Positions 34,842-46,212 of a DNA stretch of 64,000 nucleotides are shown here, piece by piece. Numbering within the stretch: the first letter of the stretch is position 1; every line of letters starts with the position of its first letter. A program made the translations under genes and the position numbers. Below the pieces are notes generated by a model. The model was not told the origin of the DNA. It saw only the letters and a list, made by a program, of their open reading frames with translations, and did not search any database. The stretch spans positions 186,001-250,000 of IMG/VR virus record IMGVR_UViG_3300045971_000577; one strand, written 5' to 3'.

Positions 34842-34941
34842 TGTAATATCCTCTTGGTACTTTAGCTATTTTAGCTTCGTACAAATAGAAAACGCAACTA
34901 ATCGTGGTTTAGTTGCGTCTTTTGGATATTTTGGGAAAGTT

Positions 34942-35136
34942 TTATTCTTCTTCGTCGAGCTTGCTTTTGTGCTTTTCGCCACGGGGCTGAGGATTACCCT
35001 TAGACGGTTTTCCACCCTTTTTATCAGCCTTGTGTTTGCCAGAACCGGTAGTTTGGGCATTCTTGGCTACGAAATTACGTGGTTGTGTAGCAGGCACCTT
35101 TGCTGGTTTTGCTTCAAAAAGTTCAAACAATCTCAT
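34942..35136 (-). CDS. Small basic late protein (MRLFELFEAK leader)
   Basis: GGAG SD; Lys-rich. Confidence 0.6.
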   Translation of the reverse strand: MRLFELFEAKPAKVPATQPRNFVAKNAQTTGSGKHKADKKGGKPSKGNPQPRGEKHKSKLDEEE

Positions 35137-35396: not shown

Positions 35397-35774
35397 TCAT
35401 GTTGATTTTTTCCTAAATGCTAAGTAGTTATCCATTAATGAGTGAATATTCTTTGTTCCCTCTGGATTCTTGCTGTGGACAGTATAACTGAAATCGTCAG
35501 GTATCAATCCGGTATCCAGATCATAATCGACCAACCATTTTGCAAAGTCCATGCCGGTTTTGCCGTCAGAATAATCTCCAGCGTAGTGCATCAAACCCAA
35601 ATCATGGTCAAAACTGATCACATTTGGTACGCCGTTCGATTTGACCCACTCGCAGGCTTCTGCAAAGGAACGAACAATCTGCCAGTCTGCACCCCAAAAC
35701 CCGCAGCCACCAATAAGGATCCAGGTTACGTCCTTTGGCACTCGTTCGTCGTCAAGGAATAGATATTTTTTCAT
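35397..35774 (-). CDS. Cyclic-phosphate-processing receiver-like domain protein
   Basis: LFLDDER.P, ISFDHDLG, KTGMDFAKWL, VHSKNP. Confidence 0.8.
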   Translation of the reverse strand: MKKYLFLDDERVPKDVTWILIGGCGFWGADWQIVRSFAEACEWVKSNGVPNVISFDHDLGLMHYAGDYSDGKTGMDFAKWLVDYDLDTGLIPDDFSYTVHSKNPEGTKNIHSLMDNYLAFRKKST

Positions 35775-35791
35775 AATGTATTGTAACAAGT

Positions 35792-35825
35792 AAAAATGGC
35801 AGTGGCAAGTCTCCCTACCACTGCC
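35792..35825 (-). terminator. Intrinsic terminator
   Basis: GGCAGTGG/CCACTGCC stem plus T5. Confidence 0.75.
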
Positions 35826-35828
35826 AAA

Positions 35829-36018
35829 TGTGTGTATCTAGGCACCCCACCTAAATTCCCCGTCCTGTGTTTCGGATCCTCCGCGGTTACATTCCCTCTG
35901 TAGAAGAAAGTGCCGCTCCGCCCTATATAGAAGCATGGATGCAGTCGACTGCATTTTATCCAGAGACTCTATGTTCAAACCACAGGTTCGCTAATCCGGC
36001 CCTACAAAGCCACACACA
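35829..36018 (-). ncRNA. Unidentified ~190-nt structured RNA candidate
   Basis: No credible ORF; ends pair (TGTGTGT/ACACACA); internal CCTGTG/CACAGG and ATGCAG/CTGCAT stems; followed by a terminator. Confidence 0.5.
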
Positions 36019-36025
36019 AACAACC

Positions 36026-36418
36026 TTATTTTATAACTTTCATTGTATAGTAAGCTTCGCATTGTAGCTTTGCAAGCGCAACCACCTTTTCCTCGTACGA
36101 AATTTCGTCCGCTCCAGGTTTCTTACCGTAAATCTTTGAAGCTATTCTATCGAAGTTATGCACCAAATCGTACAGGTTGTTCTGCACAATCTTAGCATAG
36201 GACTTACTCTGCTTCTTTACATAATCCTCGATGCACGCACTAACTTTCTCTTCTCTATCTACTATATCGATTAGTTTACCTGTTGGTATGATATATTGTT
36301 CTTCAAATATCTTATGAACTTCAAGAGGAGTGATTACTTCCGGTGGAAGCGGTTCAACACCCTTTGAAAAGACATTTGTTGCAACAAATAGTAGGAGAAA
36401 TATTAGTGTTCGCATCAC
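36026..36418 (-). CDS. Secreted/membrane hypothetical protein
   Basis: Signal-peptide-like N-terminus. Confidence 0.65.
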   Translation of the reverse strand: MMRTLIFLLLFVATNVFSKGVEPLPPEVITPLEVHKIFEEQYIIPTGKLIDIVDREEKVSACIEDYVKKQSKSYAKIVQNNLYDLVHNFDRIASKIYGKKPGADEISYEEKVVALAKLQCEAYYTMKVIK

Positions 36419-36445: not shown

Positions 36446-37507
36446 TTAGACTTCTTCGTCAGTACCAGCCTTAACGATCTTCAGCTGGGCCTTCTTCTGG
36501 CGAATGTTCTTCTCGACTTGGGCTTCCGCTTCTTCATACGTCATGTTCTCGTATTCAACCCAATCAGAGTCACGAACACGAACCAGGTCGTACAACTGTT
36601 CGTCGGAATCAAGCGGCAGGTCGCCGAAACCATCATCGTCAAACAGTTCTTCAGGCGGTTCGTCAGCATCTTCATGCACAACATCTGCACCAGTAGCGAA
36701 CGGCCAGACAGCTTGCGGAGCCAGAACGTCACGTACCACGCGGGCTGCCTGGGCAGCATCCACATTACCAGCAACCACTTCGGCAAACGCCTGAGCGGCA
36801 TCGCCTTGAACTTCAGCAACCACTTCGTACTTCATGCAACGACCCTTGGCACCGTTGTAGTCAGTAGGAATGCTAACCACGTCAGCCGGGCTGATCTTCA
36901 GGATCATGACAGGCTGATCGCGACCACCGAAGTGACCCAGATAGCTTTCGCTGCAGAAGTGCAGACCGGTGGAGCAATGCGAATCAGGATCATCGTCAAC
37001 CAAGTTGCGATCCATCTCGACCACAGCACCGACATGGTTGCTGATAGAACCGGAGTGAATGTCCAGGTAGTCATTGCGAACACGCTTGAATGCCAAGAAA
37101 TAGCCGTCTTGCGTGATAGGCAGGTTGTTCTTTTCCAGGAAGCCGTAGACCTGGTCCACAGAACGCTTGGACGGGTTCTGCATCAGGTTTTCCATGAAGC
37201 GTGCCATCGAATCGACAGGCATACCGTCTTGGAACATTTCCAGCATACGTGCGGTCAGCGCGTTGTGGAACGGTTGACCCTTCCAGAGGATCTTGTTGCC
37301 GTCCAGGCTGATATTACCCTTGCCGAAGTTGATAAGTACCTTCTTGGGCGAAACGAGATCACGGAGTGAATCCCATTCCCTGTTCTTCAAGGCGTCCACG
37401 ATCTTGCCGTAGGCAATGTGGGTGTCCTTCGAGATTGTGTGGCTCTTGCCATCGATTACCAGGATGATGTTCTTACCCTGGATCAGATACGGAATCGCTT
37501 GTGTCAT
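36446..37507 (-). CDS. rIIB: rIIB-like protein
   Basis: GYFLAFKRV, VEMDRNLVDD, CSTGLHFCS, KISPADVVSIP, KGRCMKYEV. Confidence 0.9.
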   Translation of the reverse strand: MTQAIPYLIQGKNIILVIDGKSHTISKDTHIAYGKIVDALKNREWDSLRDLVSPKKVLINFGKGNISLDGNKILWKGQPFHNALTARMLEMFQDGMPVDSMARFMENLMQNPSKRSVDQVYGFLEKNNLPITQDGYFLAFKRVRNDYLDIHSGSISNHVGAVVEMDRNLVDDDPDSHCSTGLHFCSESYLGHFGGRDQPVMILKISPADVVSIPTDYNGAKGRCMKYEVVAEVQGDAAQAFAEVVAGNVDAAQAARVVRDVLAPQAVWPFATGADVVHEDADEPPEELFDDDGFGDLPLDSDEQLYDLVRVRDSDWVEYENMTYEEAEAQVEKNIRQKKAQLKIVKAGTDEEV

Positions 37508-37516
37508 GTTTTACCT

Positions 37517-39628
37517 TTACTGTTTGTCAATGAGTTTGATGTACTCTGCTACTTCTTTTTCATCCGCCTGATGCAAGTGCTTCAGAAGAGGATACTTTGC
37601 ATACAAAGCTGCCTTTGTATCGTTGATTTCTTTCTTGATTTTGTCTACCGTTACAGCCTTACCATACTGGCCGCACAATGTAACAAGTTGCGAAACATTA
37701 CCATTGGCACGCTTTACGCTACCATATTTAGCCATGTATTTGGCATAATCCGAGGTCGAATCGACCATCTTTGCAACATTTGCATTAGTATAAATGCGAG
37801 TGGTGTAATGGTCAAGCATTTCCGATGCAACCAGACCGATGATTTGCCTATCACCGACCTTGGCGGTTTCTTCGCGAATCTTTTCTTCGATCCACACCCA
37901 GTTATCCAGTTCAGCAATTTCGGCAGCACGGCTCTTTCGCACACCGTAGATTTCTACGTTGGCTAGCGATGAAATACCGCACTCGTCCATCAACGCCTTC
38001 AGATTATGGATGGGAAATGCGATACCTTCCTTATCTACTGGATCGTAGTTATTCAAAAGGACGTAGTAATACGTCACATTCTCGTCAATCTCGAAATCTG
38101 CAGGGTGGAATGTGTATGATGCAGAATACCCGCGGCGTGCGCACGCCTTTGGCCCCATCTTCATAATGCCTTGAGTGGACGTAGGCTTGGCCTTTTCGCG
38201 CTTTGTCAGCGTGCTGGCGTCAACAATGGTTGGCGGAGTGAACAGCTCGAGCATCAGTGCATCGAATGCTGCGCGTCTATCTTCCACAGTGGCGCCGTTA
38301 TGCGATACGCAAAACACGGTTGCCGTTGCATTGGTGCTGTTGTAATGGTATCGTGCTCGTGCAACGCAACCCGTTTTCAGATCGTTGAATACAAACACCA
38401 CATCCGTGTCTACCGCAATTTCGGTGTACTTGACATAACCACCGCCTGCAACATAATCGCTGCCTTCGCCGGTCTTGTAGGAACTACCGTGACGTGAAGC
38501 AAATGCCTTGATGTCGAATCCACGAGCCGCCAGGTCAGTTTCCTTGAACTTGAATGACTTTCTGCCATAATACGCCAGTGGATCATACAGTGGAAATTTC
38601 GTATCTGCAACATATTTCGCCACAGCAGCCTTGTACAGGTTTTCGTGTGCGCGTTGTTGCAAATACGCTGCGCGAAGCCAAAGATTCTCAATCTCATCTG
38701 CCTTGGTAGCAAGATGGATTGCAAGATTAGCATTCAATTCTTCCAGCTTCTTCTTGATGCTCTTCAGTGTCATCGGAACATAGCTCAGTTCTTCGCGTGA
38801 TGCTGCAAAATCCAGCTCACCAATACCAAACTCCAACGCAAGACCGCATTCGAGCAGATTAGAAAGTTGGCCGAAGTGTTTCTGCGGCTCGGGAATCTTG
38901 CCCAGCGGATAGGCAATGTTGCCCATGATTGCGACAGAGTGATAATTGTGTTCACGGGCATGTACGCCGGGAACAATGTCACGTTCCTTGAACACTTCCG
39001 GCTGTACCGTAAAGTGATCCACACCAATGATTGTGGGCTGCAACTTGAACCACTGGAATACTTCCTGCGATTCGTGCCTGAAGCTGTTGTAATCGTAGCG
39101 GTCGGTAACGCTGAACTTAACTTCGACGCCGTTTCCTTCGTCGGTAAGTTCTTCGCTCATTTCTGCAATGGACGGGACACCAACCTCGTTGATGAACGCA
39201 CTATAAATGCGGCGCGTGCCGTTCTTTATAGCGGTAACGGTAAAGTTTTCCGTGTAGCTGAATGGACTCTTCGAACCAAGTCCAAGTGCGCCAATGAACT
39301 CGTTGGAGTCAGTCTTGGTGGATTCGAAATAGGTGGTGTAAATATTGACAACCTGACTGCCATCAAGTCCGAGACCAAAGTCACGAACGGCAAACCAGGG
39401 TTCGAATTGTGTAGGAAGGTGTACTTCGAAAGGAATATCTGCCTTGCCGGCGCCGACGTGGCTGTCAACGGCGTTGCAGGAAAGTTCCCGGATAATGGCG
39501 CGGATCTTGTTTGAGTACAAGCCGTCCGAAAGAATTTTGAATGCTTTGGCGGAGTTGCGGATTCTGAATTCACCAGTAGTGCCCACGTTAGATAGGACTA
39601 CTTCATTGACTGCGACGTCTAGCTTCAT
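37517..39628 (-). CDS. rIIA: rIIA-like protein (GHKL ATPase fold)
   Basis: LYSNKIRAIIRELSCNAVDSH, RDFGLGL, GALGLGSKSPF; directly upstream of rIIB. Confidence 0.92.
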   Translation of the reverse strand: MKLDVAVNEVVLSNVGTTGEFRIRNSAKAFKILSDGLYSNKIRAIIRELSCNAVDSHVGAGKADIPFEVHLPTQFEPWFAVRDFGLGLDGSQVVNIYTTYFESTKTDSNEFIGALGLGSKSPFSYTENFTVTAIKNGTRRIYSAFINEVGVPSIAEMSEELTDEGNGVEVKFSVTDRYDYNSFRHESQEVFQWFKLQPTIIGVDHFTVQPEVFKERDIVPGVHAREHNYHSVAIMGNIAYPLGKIPEPQKHFGQLSNLLECGLALEFGIGELDFAASREELSYVPMTLKSIKKKLEELNANLAIHLATKADEIENLWLRAAYLQQRAHENLYKAAVAKYVADTKFPLYDPLAYYGRKSFKFKETDLAARGFDIKAFASRHGSSYKTGEGSDYVAGGGYVKYTEIAVDTDVVFVFNDLKTGCVARARYHYNSTNATATVFCVSHNGATVEDRRAAFDALMLELFTPPTIVDASTLTKREKAKPTSTQGIMKMGPKACARRGYSASYTFHPADFEIDENVTYYYVLLNNYDPVDKEGIAFPIHNLKALMDECGISSLANVEIYGVRKSRAAEIAELDNWVWIEEKIREETAKVGDRQIIGLVASEMLDHYTTRIYTNANVAKMVDSTSDYAKYMAKYGSVKRANGNVSQLVTLCGQYGKAVTVDKIKKEINDTKAALYAKYPLLKHLHQADEKEVAEYIKLIDKQ

Positions 39629-46120: not shown

Positions 46121-46212
46121 TGGTAGGAGCGTAGGGAATCGGACCCTATCGAGAACACCTATCTAGTGCTAAGAGGCTTATAAGACCTCCCTGACTGCCA
46201 AGTCTCGCTCCC
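46121..46212 (-). tRNA. Class-II-type tRNA with UAU anticodon (Ile-like)
   Basis: GGGAGCG/CGCTCCT acceptor, A73, CCA; loop CT-TAT-AA; 24-nt variable region; T-loop TCCGATT. Confidence 0.7.

Follow-up and report, generated by a model that had tools for sequence, protein, structure and literature searches.

Does the GC-rich non-coding block that follows the rII genes of an uncultured 369-kb freshwater phage encode a structured RNA, and if so, of what kind? The block was inspected within a 64,000-nt stretch (the window; positions 186,001 to 250,000 of IMG/VR record IMGVR_UViG_3300045971_000577). A preliminary description, made from the sequence alone, placed at positions 35792–36018 an unidentified structured RNA of about 190 nt with its own terminator, located downstream of rIIB. 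That observation was confirmed, and the coordinates are right, although the description did not state that the element lies on the minus strand, the strand of all the neighbouring genes. The core of the RNA runs from 36018 to 35829 and is followed by an intrinsic terminator at 35826–35792. The G+C content is 0.51, compared with 0.37–0.45 in the flanks. rIIB (36446–37507, minus strand; phrog_609, E 3e-75) lies upstream, but is separated from the RNA by a 130-codon open reading frame, orf130 (36026–36418, minus strand), which codes for a protein with a signal-peptide-like N-terminus and no family match; its stop codon (36028–36026) ends 7 nt before the RNA. The downstream gene (35397–35774, minus strand) codes for a protein with a cRec receiver-like domain (PF20274, E 1.5e-22), and its ATG at 35774 lies 18 nt after the U-run of the terminator.

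Searches for a known family gave no relevant match. No Rfam model matched the element at the gathering threshold, at E≤10 on positions 35600–36200, or at E≤5 on nine loci with divergent members; the only hits were two chance matches outside the element. ARAGORN found 14 tRNAs elsewhere in the window, but no tRNA or tmRNA at 35792–36018. The preliminary description was right in that the RNA matches no tRNA, tmRNA or RNase P. A distant-mode blastn search of the region against 50,697 GenBank phage records returned no match. The presence of the cRec neighbour, which is linked to RNA repair, prompted the idea of a Y RNA (YrlA), the partner of Ro60/Rsr. However, the TROVE domain (PF05731) was absent from the complete 369-kb genome, while the control genomes gave hits; an RtcB protein is present, but is encoded 140 kb away. 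Neither Rfam 15 nor full-text literature searches revealed a described family to which the element could be assigned.

Eight homologues with 70–79% nucleotide identity were first found downstream of rIIB. A covariance model then scored the window element over the full model (198 bits, E 4e-52), found it to be a single copy in the 369-kb genome, and led to 62 homologues (50 distinct) in IMG/VR and JGI metagenome contigs of related jumbo phages (alignment A4), always just after rIIB or orf130. Synteny with rIIB was seen in all 25 loci analysed. Homologues of orf130 precede the RNA in most loci, while in six the RNA directly follows rIIB. The cRec gene lies within 1.4 kb downstream in the relatives analysed; a search around this gene yielded only one near-identical contig. 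A 21-base signature of the RNA gave no exact hit in 185,579 prokaryote genomes. The pattern GCACTT-N13-17-AATGTAAC proved too loose, and added at least one member (L151). Two models of the RNA (R1 and R2) gave no hit in 73 more distant rIIB loci, in which the longer gaps after rIIB hold a small hydrophobic ORF rather than an RNA. The nearest cultured relatives, Pseudomonas phage PA5oct and Sinorhizobium phage Phosso, had no R2 hit either. In PA5oct, whose capsid protein is 77.7% identical, rIIB is followed by an oligopeptidase gene, and its four published ncRNAs lie elsewhere (PMC7318152).

Although the fold of the single sequence is weak evidence by itself (z = -1.94), the comparison of the homologues is decisive. 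RNAalifold found compensatory changes in 37 of 74 pairs. In alignment A4, 96.8% of cells were paired and 43 of 70 pairs showed compensatory double changes, a result that none of 500 shuffles reached, while slid controls gave 34–45% paired cells. Mutual information recovered the same pairs without reference to the model; beyond the known helices, it showed only a three-column co-change in P7 that looks clade-specific. G·U pairs outnumbered A·C by 366 to 22, and pairing was 96.8% on this strand versus 86.3% on the other, indicating that the structure belongs to the minus-strand transcript and not to the DNA or the opposite strand. Indels of 1 and 2 nt across the family argue against an open reading frame. 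The RNA is more conserved than the neighbouring rIIB gene (70–79% versus 62–73% nucleotide identity).

The covariation-supported fold has seven helices, of which P1 closes two stacked four-way junctions (P1, P2, P3 and P7; and P3, P4, P5 and P6). P1 is formed by UGUGUGU (36018–36012) and ACACACA (35835–35829), the paired ends noted in the preliminary description; six of its seven pairs show compensatory changes and 96% of cells are paired. P2 (36011–35998) is a hairpin in which all four stem pairs covary and are 100% paired. Its loop, UUGUAG (36007–36002), pairs with the loop CUACAG (35903–35898) of P5. This L2-L5 kissing loop is 96% paired; the pair of A4 columns 16 and 131 is GC in 32 and AU in 13 sequences, with a co-insertion in two members (L282 and L264) and at least six switches on the tree. 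L2 is predicted to pair better with its own L5 than with that of other members (-6.3 versus -4.2 kcal/mol). P3, the CCUGUG/CACAGG stem already recognized in the preliminary description (35986–35981 with 35869–35864), encloses P4, P5 and P6 and covaries at columns 39–41 with 164–166, for example UA in 23 and CG in 21 sequences. P4 (35980–35920) is a long irregular arm with an A-rich bulge, ending in the hairpin AUGCAG-UCGA-CUGCAU, also noted previously; 18 of the 21 pairs of its helices have double changes. P5 (35916–35883) has 12 pairs, seven with double changes and 99.5% paired, and contains the invariant internal loop GGCACUU / AAUGUAAC. P6 (35882–35874) is a mini-hairpin (GG-AGGAU-CC; consensus GGnGG..CC) that is only weakly supported, since its two pairs, although 99% paired, show one-sided changes only. 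J3/7 (35863–35857) is a nearly invariant single-stranded ACGGGGA. Its GGGGA is invariant across the IMG/VR members of alignment A3; the metagenome members were found with a pattern requiring these bases, and do not test this independently. P7 (35856–35836) is the hairpin AUUUAGGU-GGGGU-GCCUAGAU with an invariant GGGG loop; it abuts the 3′ strand of P1 with no linker, its eight pairs are 100% paired, two with double changes, and UUAGGUGGGG is invariant in A3. Two alternative pairings proposed in the preliminary description were not supported: in many relatives the GUGCC of GGCAC/GUGCC becomes GAACC while GGCAC stays unchanged, and CGGAU/AUCCG is specific to the window. The kissing loop, as well as the property of the P4 loop described below, had been missed.

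The tetraloop of P4 (L4; UCGA, 35948–35945) was self-complementary in 47 of 47 distinct sequences. It occurs as UCGA, UGCA, GUAC, ACGU, UUAA, UAUA and CCGG, with at least nine palindrome-to-palindrome switches on the tree. The ‘pairs’ 77–80 and 78–79 were 100% Watson–Crick, with 20 double-change cells and no single changes, and L4 ranked second by mutual information. Since adjacent bases cannot pair within one loop, this points to a symmetric homodimer; the duplex dimer is predicted to be 16.5 kcal/mol more stable than two hairpins. The same argument, that covariation of adjacent nucleotides means cross-chain pairing, was confirmed by cryo-EM for L9.3 of OLE and L21a of GOLLD (bioRxiv 10.1101/2024.12.08.627333). 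In principle, the palindromic loop could reflect a DNA-level bias towards perfect palindromes, but the stem below it tolerates G·U pairs. No G·U was seen in the two loop ‘pairs’, although the number of events is small. Further, a 4-nt loop is too tight for a classical kissing complex, and the geometry of the contact (an opened stem or an extended duplex) is therefore inferred.

The terminator is strong: a hairpin of 13 pairs (35826–35797; -23.4 kcal/mol) capped by the GNRA loop GAGA and followed by UUUUU. An equivalent terminator (-14 to -24 kcal/mol, with 4–8 U) was present in 46 of the 47 relatives that could be assessed, GNRA-capped in 32, consistent with a discrete 3′-end. A discrete transcript, its 5′-end and its abundance remain putative, since all sequencing runs containing the stretch are DNA metagenomes. 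No convincing promoter of its own was found. The sequence TTGCAA-17-TACTAT inside orf130, seen by eye, scores only 8 of 12, is below the threshold of the scan, coincides with conserved Leu-Ala and Tyr-Tyr codons, and is absent where the RNA follows rIIB directly, although a weak promoter cannot be ruled out.

The interpretation offered in the preliminary description was thus only partly supported: of its suggestions, a new ncRNA class is the one that the evidence favours. The element is the founding member, in this window, of a previously undescribed family of structured non-coding RNAs of about 190 nt, carried by a clade of uncultured freshwater and wastewater jumbo phages related to PA5oct. 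The analysis establishes that the RNA is encoded on the gene strand, 1–7 nt after (or overlapping) the stop codon of the last gene of the rIIA-rIIB(-orf130) unit, that it ends at its own strong terminator, and that P1, the two junctions and the L2-L5 contact hold a compact core whose nearly invariant parts are the P5 internal loop, J3/7 and the GGGG loop of P7. That two molecules pair through the tip of P4, loop to loop or as an extended duplex, so that the working unit would be a symmetric dimer, is deduced from covariation. The remainder is inference: the RNA would be made by the host RNA polymerase as the 3′-end of the rII transcription unit (rII is early in T4, and relatives of this phage use host RNA polymerase and intrinsic terminators; PMC7318152), perhaps also from a weak promoter inside orf130; it would accumulate as a free, stable RNA protected by P1 and the terminator hairpin; and it would act in trans by presenting its invariant G-rich surface to a conserved protein or RNA partner of host or phage, as yet unidentified. 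A scaffold or decoy in host take-over or counter-defence is a guess. Taken as a whole, this explanation is somewhat more likely than not.

A more far-reaching version, which remains tentative, is that the RNA assembles without protein into a symmetric dimer, a miniature counterpart of the OLE, GOLLD and ROOL RNA-only complexes, is produced with the rII genes, and serves as a decoy or scaffold that captures a host factor, for example a defence sensor or a nuclease, in a locus that also carries rII and a predicted cyclic-nucleotide/cADPR-processing cRec enzyme. It would then be the smallest natural RNA so far whose quaternary structure is written in its covariation, and a new kind of RNA-based host take-over tool. 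What is new is the RNA family; self-pairing structured phage RNAs of unknown function have precedents. Few structured RNA classes are known from jumbo phages, and this one has unusually clean comparative support, its covariation encoding helices, an intramolecular kissing loop and an inferred contact that can form only between two molecules. Its size makes it accessible to crystallography, NMR, cryo-EM and complete mutational scanning, and it could serve as a tractable model for how natural RNAs self-assemble, a question opened by the OLE, ROOL and GOLLD structures. Its fixed place at the end of the rII unit, next to predicted counter-defence genes, provides a starting point for finding its partner, and cultured relatives lacking it, such as PA5oct on Pseudomonas aeruginosa, would be a clean background for adding it.

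Like GOLLD and ROOL, which are encoded by phages or prophages, often near tRNA islands, the element is an elaborately folded, phage-borne RNA of unknown function in a tRNA-rich genome. It shares with OLE and GOLLD a loop that switches between palindromes, and with these ornate RNAs the presence of intramolecular kissing loops. This is a resemblance in how it would work and not membership, since no family model matched. It is also much shorter (about 190 nt versus roughly 600–800 nt or more), lies at the end of the rII unit rather than next to a tRNA, and its single symmetric contact predicts a dimer, not a cage, with a quaternary structure that is inferred here rather than observed. As in bacterial sRNAs derived from 3′-UTRs, it starts just after a stop codon and ends at the terminator of that message, with a U-rich linker, a hairpin and a long U tail making up the 3′-end. 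However, those sRNAs are usually short and act through a linear seed, whereas this RNA is large and globular, its invariant parts are structured, and it has no known target complementarity. The phi29 packaging RNA and the retroviral dimerization initiation site oligomerize through loop-loop pairs that covary between relatives, the latter via a palindromic loop. There is no homology to either; the phi29 RNA uses two different loops to form a ring on the portal of a small podovirus, while the present phage has a T4-type head with a Gp23-like capsid protein.

The alternative that survives best, and remains possible, is a cis-acting control of read-through, in which the folded RNA would decide whether RNA polymerase stops at the adjacent terminator or continues into the downstream genes, either as a ligand-sensing riboswitch or as a processive antitermination element of the nut, put or EAR type, much as nutR lies between cro and tR1 in lambda. 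The layout is constant: the structured RNA, 0–5 nt, the terminator, and then a ribosome binding site and gene. A conserved fold directly followed by a terminator, as seen in 46 of 47 members, is a necessary but not a sufficient feature of a transcription-terminating riboswitch. In about half of the loci, GGAG or the start codon follows the U-run within about 10 nt, leaving no room for a promoter, and that gene must be read through the terminator. The size, the pseudoknot and the invariant junction nucleotides resemble large aptamers, and the downstream genes are linked to NAD or nucleotides: a truncated protein of the UDP-glucose dehydrogenase family, and cRec, predicted to process cyclic phosphates or cADPR (PMC7824862). 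Against this reading, the first downstream gene differs between loci (a dehydrogenase, a 150-aa ORF, cRec or a 47-aa ORF), although the block of dehydrogenase-like, cRec and small ORFs is syntenic. No antiterminator pairing was found. The terminator stems vary freely next to an invariant 3′ part of the RNA and do not covary with L2 or L5 (own versus cross duplex energies of -4.3 versus -4.9 and -3.0 versus -3.3 kcal/mol, with L2-L5 as positive control), and no complementarity to P1 or P7 was seen by eye. The terminators are very strong, no Rfam riboswitch or leader model matched, and the obligatory self-complementarity of L4 would imply that two free molecules meet, for which a nascent cis element has no obvious use. 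A processive antiterminator, however, needs no antiterminator hairpin, and the element does lie inside a transcription unit immediately before a terminator that downstream genes have to pass. Compared with lambda nut, HK022 put and Bacillus EAR, it is much larger, the self-complementary loop has no role in such a mechanism, and no Rfam family matched, which bears on these elements only insofar as they have Rfam models.

A passive 3′-UTR element, which only protects the rII mRNA from 3′-5′ and 5′-end-dependent decay or insulates it from neighbouring transcription, is unlikely. It would fit a start 1–7 nt after the stop codon and a terminator shared with the upstream message, but a terminator hairpin alone would be enough, and passive protection does not explain about 45% invariant nucleotides in loops and junctions, a covarying kissing loop, a loop that must stay palindromic, or conservation above that of the coding neighbour. 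A self-cleaving ribozyme that cuts itself out of the rII transcript at its 5′ edge, leaving a 2′,3′-cyclic phosphate next to a gene predicted to process such ends, is also improbable. The tight packing against the upstream stop codon, the pseudoknotted fold with invariant junction nucleotides and the cRec neighbour would agree with it, but no Rfam ribozyme family matched, the architecture is unlike HDV, hatchet, twister or glmS, and the cRec link is by position only. The resemblance to 6S RNA and the RNA polymerase decoy suggested in the preliminary description were not upheld: the RNA has the length, paired ends and terminator of a 6S RNA, and phages benefit from redirecting RNA polymerase, but RF00013 did not match the window element or the nine divergent loci in the searches described above, the fold is branched rather than a rod with a central open-promoter-like bubble, and nothing speaks for a decoy. 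Finally, although a perfect 16-bp DNA palindrome lies at 35939–35954, a DNA-level element (a protein-binding palindrome, an origin or a recombination site) is very unlikely given the strand asymmetry of the pairing and the fact that the palindrome changes sequence while keeping its symmetry, which is base-pairing logic and not protein recognition.

The window (positions 186001-250000) belongs to a 369,145-bp virus record with direct terminal repeats. All genes around the element lie on the minus strand: rIIA (37517-39628; phrog_612, E 1e-131), rIIB (36446-37507; phrog_609, E 3e-75), orf130 (36026-36418) and, after a gap of 236 nt, a gene coding for a cRec-domain protein (35397-35774; PF20274, E 1.5e-22). 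The product of orf130 has a signal-peptide-like N-terminus (MRTLIFLLLFVATNVFSKG) and a conserved C-terminus (..LQCEAYYTM..), matches no Pfam, PHROG or NCBIfam family, and is present in most, but not all, of the genomes that carry the RNA. Read on the minus strand, the gap contains the RNA core (36018-35829), followed by a 13-bp hairpin (35826-35797) and UUUUU, which a scan for intrinsic terminators reported. The preliminary description, which proposed an approximately 190-nt structured RNA with its own terminator downstream of rIIB, was therefore confirmed as an observation, and it is extended here. Since the fold predicted from the single sequence was only mildly better than that of shuffled sequences (z = -1.94), the case for a structured RNA had to be made by comparison.

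The element does not correspond to a known family. At gathering threshold, Rfam 15 gave only tRNAs for the window; it gave nothing relevant at E<=10 for the region 35600-36200, and nothing at E<=5 for nine loci carrying divergent relatives. ARAGORN detected 14 tRNAs elsewhere in the window but none here. Of these, a 92-nt tRNA-Ile (anticodon tat; 46121-46212, minus strand) was not reported by the Rfam tRNA model, which listed 12 tRNAs in total; it could be a false call or an unusually long tRNA, possibly with an insert. A blastn search against GenBank phages found no match, and full-text searches of the literature found no description of such an RNA.

Loci were retrieved through rIIB, and yielded seven homologues of the RNA with 70-79% nucleotide identity, always located downstream of rIIB. 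A covariance model (R1), together with pattern scans of IMG/VR and JGI metagenomes, raised this number to 62 hits, 50 of them distinct. The contigs are up to 385 kb long and come from freshwater, sediment, soil, pond and wastewater samples. A 21-base signature of the RNA had no exact match in one genome from each of 185,579 prokaryote species, and the element is present as a single copy in its own genome. The 73 more distant rIIB loci gave no hit with either of the two covariance models used. In several of them (loci L021, L025, L031, L032, L041 and L046), the region about 170-270 nt after rIIB appeared, when read by eye, to hold a small hydrophobic ORF below the 60-aa ORF cut-off, with no structured RNA. 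The genome encodes a T4-type Gp23 capsid protein (307642-308814 of the complete record, minus strand) that is 77.7% identical to that of Pseudomonas phage PA5oct (Arenbergviridae), which places this uncultured phage near the Arenbergviridae. PA5oct itself lacks the RNA: its rIIB is followed by an oligopeptidase gene, and its four published ncRNAs lie elsewhere.

RNAalifold analysis of eight sequences predicted 74 base pairs, 37 of them with compensatory changes. In the alignment of 62 sequences, 96.8% of 3,257 cells were standard pairs, and 43 of 70 pairs showed changes on both sides. None of 500 column shuffles reached any of the five measures considered, while sliding the partners by 1-3 columns dropped pairing to 34-45%. 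A mutual-information ranking that ignored the model placed the same pairs on top. G.U pairs outnumbered A.C by 366 to 22, indicating that the fold belongs to the minus-strand transcript. In this fold, helix P1 (7 bp) joins the two ends of the RNA, and is followed without a linker by P2, a hairpin of 4-5 bp. P3 (6 bp) opens into a second junction that carries P4, P5 and P6. P4 is a long arm with an A-rich bulge, P5 contains the invariant internal loop GGCACUU / AAUGUAAC, and P6 is a two-pair hairpin that is only weakly supported. After P3 come the nearly invariant ACGGGGA and then P7 (8 bp, loop GGGGU), which abuts the 3' strand of P1. About 45% of the positions were invariant among the first eight sequences, and the RNA is 5-12 points more conserved than the rIIB coding sequence beside it. 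Indels of 1 and 2 nt rule out a conserved ORF.

Two higher-order contacts are supported by the alignment. The loop of P2 (L2; UUGUAG) is complementary to that of P5 (L5; CUACAG), and the two loops change together: UAUAG was found with CUAUA, UGGUAG with CUACCA, and UUGAUAG with CUAUCAA, a base being inserted in both loops in the last case. Counted as a helix, this contact was 96% paired. One of its pairs was GC in 32 sequences and AU in 13, with at least six switches on a tree built without those columns. The second contact concerns the four-base loop at the tip of P4, which is its own reverse complement in all 47 distinct sequences that cover it, occurring as UCGA, UGCA, GUAC, ACGU, UUAA, UAUA and CCGG. 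Its outer and inner 'pairs' were 100% Watson-Crick, with 20 double-change cells and no one-sided change, and the inner pair ranked second of all column pairs by mutual information. The loop type switched at least nine times on the tree, each time from one palindrome to another. Two adjacent nucleotides cannot pair with each other inside a tetraloop, which suggests that the constraint derives from pairing with a second copy of the RNA. This same argument was used by Kretsch et al., whose cryo-EM analysis confirmed it for OLE L9.3 and GOLLD L21a. An extended duplex at this tip was predicted to be 16.5 kcal/mol more stable than two hairpins. We therefore regard a symmetric dimer as likely, although it is inferred rather than shown; a mutational bias toward perfect DNA palindromes is the alternative, but the G.U pairs present in the stem directly below the loop argue against it.

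Of the 47 relatives that could be assessed, 46 have a hairpin of -14 to -24 kcal/mol followed by 4-8 U, starting 0-5 nt after P1; 32 of these hairpins are capped by GNRA loops. At the 5' side, P1 starts 1-7 nt after the stop codon of orf130, or overlaps it, and in six loci lacking orf130 the same holds for the stop codon of rIIB. No convincing promoter specific for the RNA was found. A weak TTGCAA-17-TACTAT sequence inside orf130 coincides with conserved codons, and is missing where orf130 is missing. The RNA is therefore most simply explained as the 3' end of the rII transcription unit, made by the host polymerase; PA5oct uses the host polymerase, sigma70-like promoters and intrinsic terminators. 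The block located downstream is syntenic but variable, and includes an optional truncated nucleotide-sugar dehydrogenase, an optional 150-aa ORF, cRec, and small ORFs. In many relatives, the gene inserted between the RNA and cRec is a C-terminally truncated member of the UDP-glucose dehydrogenase family (about 285 aa). In about half of the loci, the ribosome-binding site of the next gene follows the U-run directly, and that gene must then be reached by read-through. In the window, a promoter-like site (35780-35808, minus strand; TTGCCA-17-TACAAT, 10 of 12, with TG) overlaps the descending arm of the terminator and ends 6 nt before the cRec start codon at 35774; it would give a nearly leaderless message. 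A similar TTGCTA-17-TAAAAT was seen by eye in L123, one of the related loci.

The sequence features that bear on mechanism point to a free, stable RNA: both ends are sealed in helices, the terminator is strong, the fold is globular with invariant loops and junctions, and one loop appears to be under selection to pair with a second molecule. Only DNA metagenomes were found to contain the stretch, so that expression of the RNA, like its function, is inferred from sequence alone, while the existence of the family, its fold and the covariation between the P2 and P5 loops are supported directly by the comparative analysis. We favour the view that this is a trans-acting, dimeric RNA that would present its invariant G-rich surface to a conserved partner. 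Given the neighbouring genes, a scaffold or decoy role might be envisaged, although this is no more than a guess. These neighbours are rII, which in T4 counters Rex exclusion, and the gene for a stand-alone cRec domain, which is predicted to process 2',3'-cyclic phosphate ends or cADPR (Iyer et al. 2021, PMC7824862).

The main alternative is that the RNA is a cis-acting element that governs read-through of its terminator, either as a riboswitch or in a manner similar to nut, put or EAR. This fits the layout of the locus. However, no alternative pairing was found, since the terminator arms do not covary with L2 or L5, while L2 and L5, used as a control, do covary with each other; nor does this possibility explain the palindromic loop. 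A passive 3'-UTR stabiliser, a self-cleaving ribozyme and a DNA-level element remain as minor possibilities. A Y-RNA-like role is unlikely because the genome has no TROVE protein, although it does encode an RtcB RNA ligase 140 kb away (78235-79362 of the complete record, minus strand; E 9e-125). A 6S RNA, to which the preliminary description had likened the element, is excluded on both model and architecture. The interpretation proposed initially is thus supported only in part: the likeness to 6S RNA is rejected, whereas the suggestion of a new ncRNA class is supported. What is new is an RNA family with unusually rich comparative evidence and a probable quaternary contact.

Two further conserved elements were observed near the RNA. 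Downstream of cRec, the window contains two overlapping small ORFs (34866-35136, minus strand); the one conserved in all relatives (34942-35136) codes for a basic protein of 56-64 aa, starting MRLFELFEAK...PRNFVAKNA..SGAG.H, that has no family match. In addition, some relatives contain a second conserved non-coding element of about 55-70 nt, located between the terminator of the RNA and the dehydrogenase-like gene, which is not present in the window. It was found in the related loci L003 (5660-5760), L004 (5570-5690), L099 (1185-1290), L115 (1330-1440, minus strand) and L270 (770-880, minus strand), and gave no Rfam hit in L099 or L115. This element has an invariant CTAACGCCACGACTTA and AATG..TA.G, and a closing stem that changes on both sides: TTTGTGT/ACACAAA, CTCATGT/ACATGAG and TCTAAGT/ACTTAGA.
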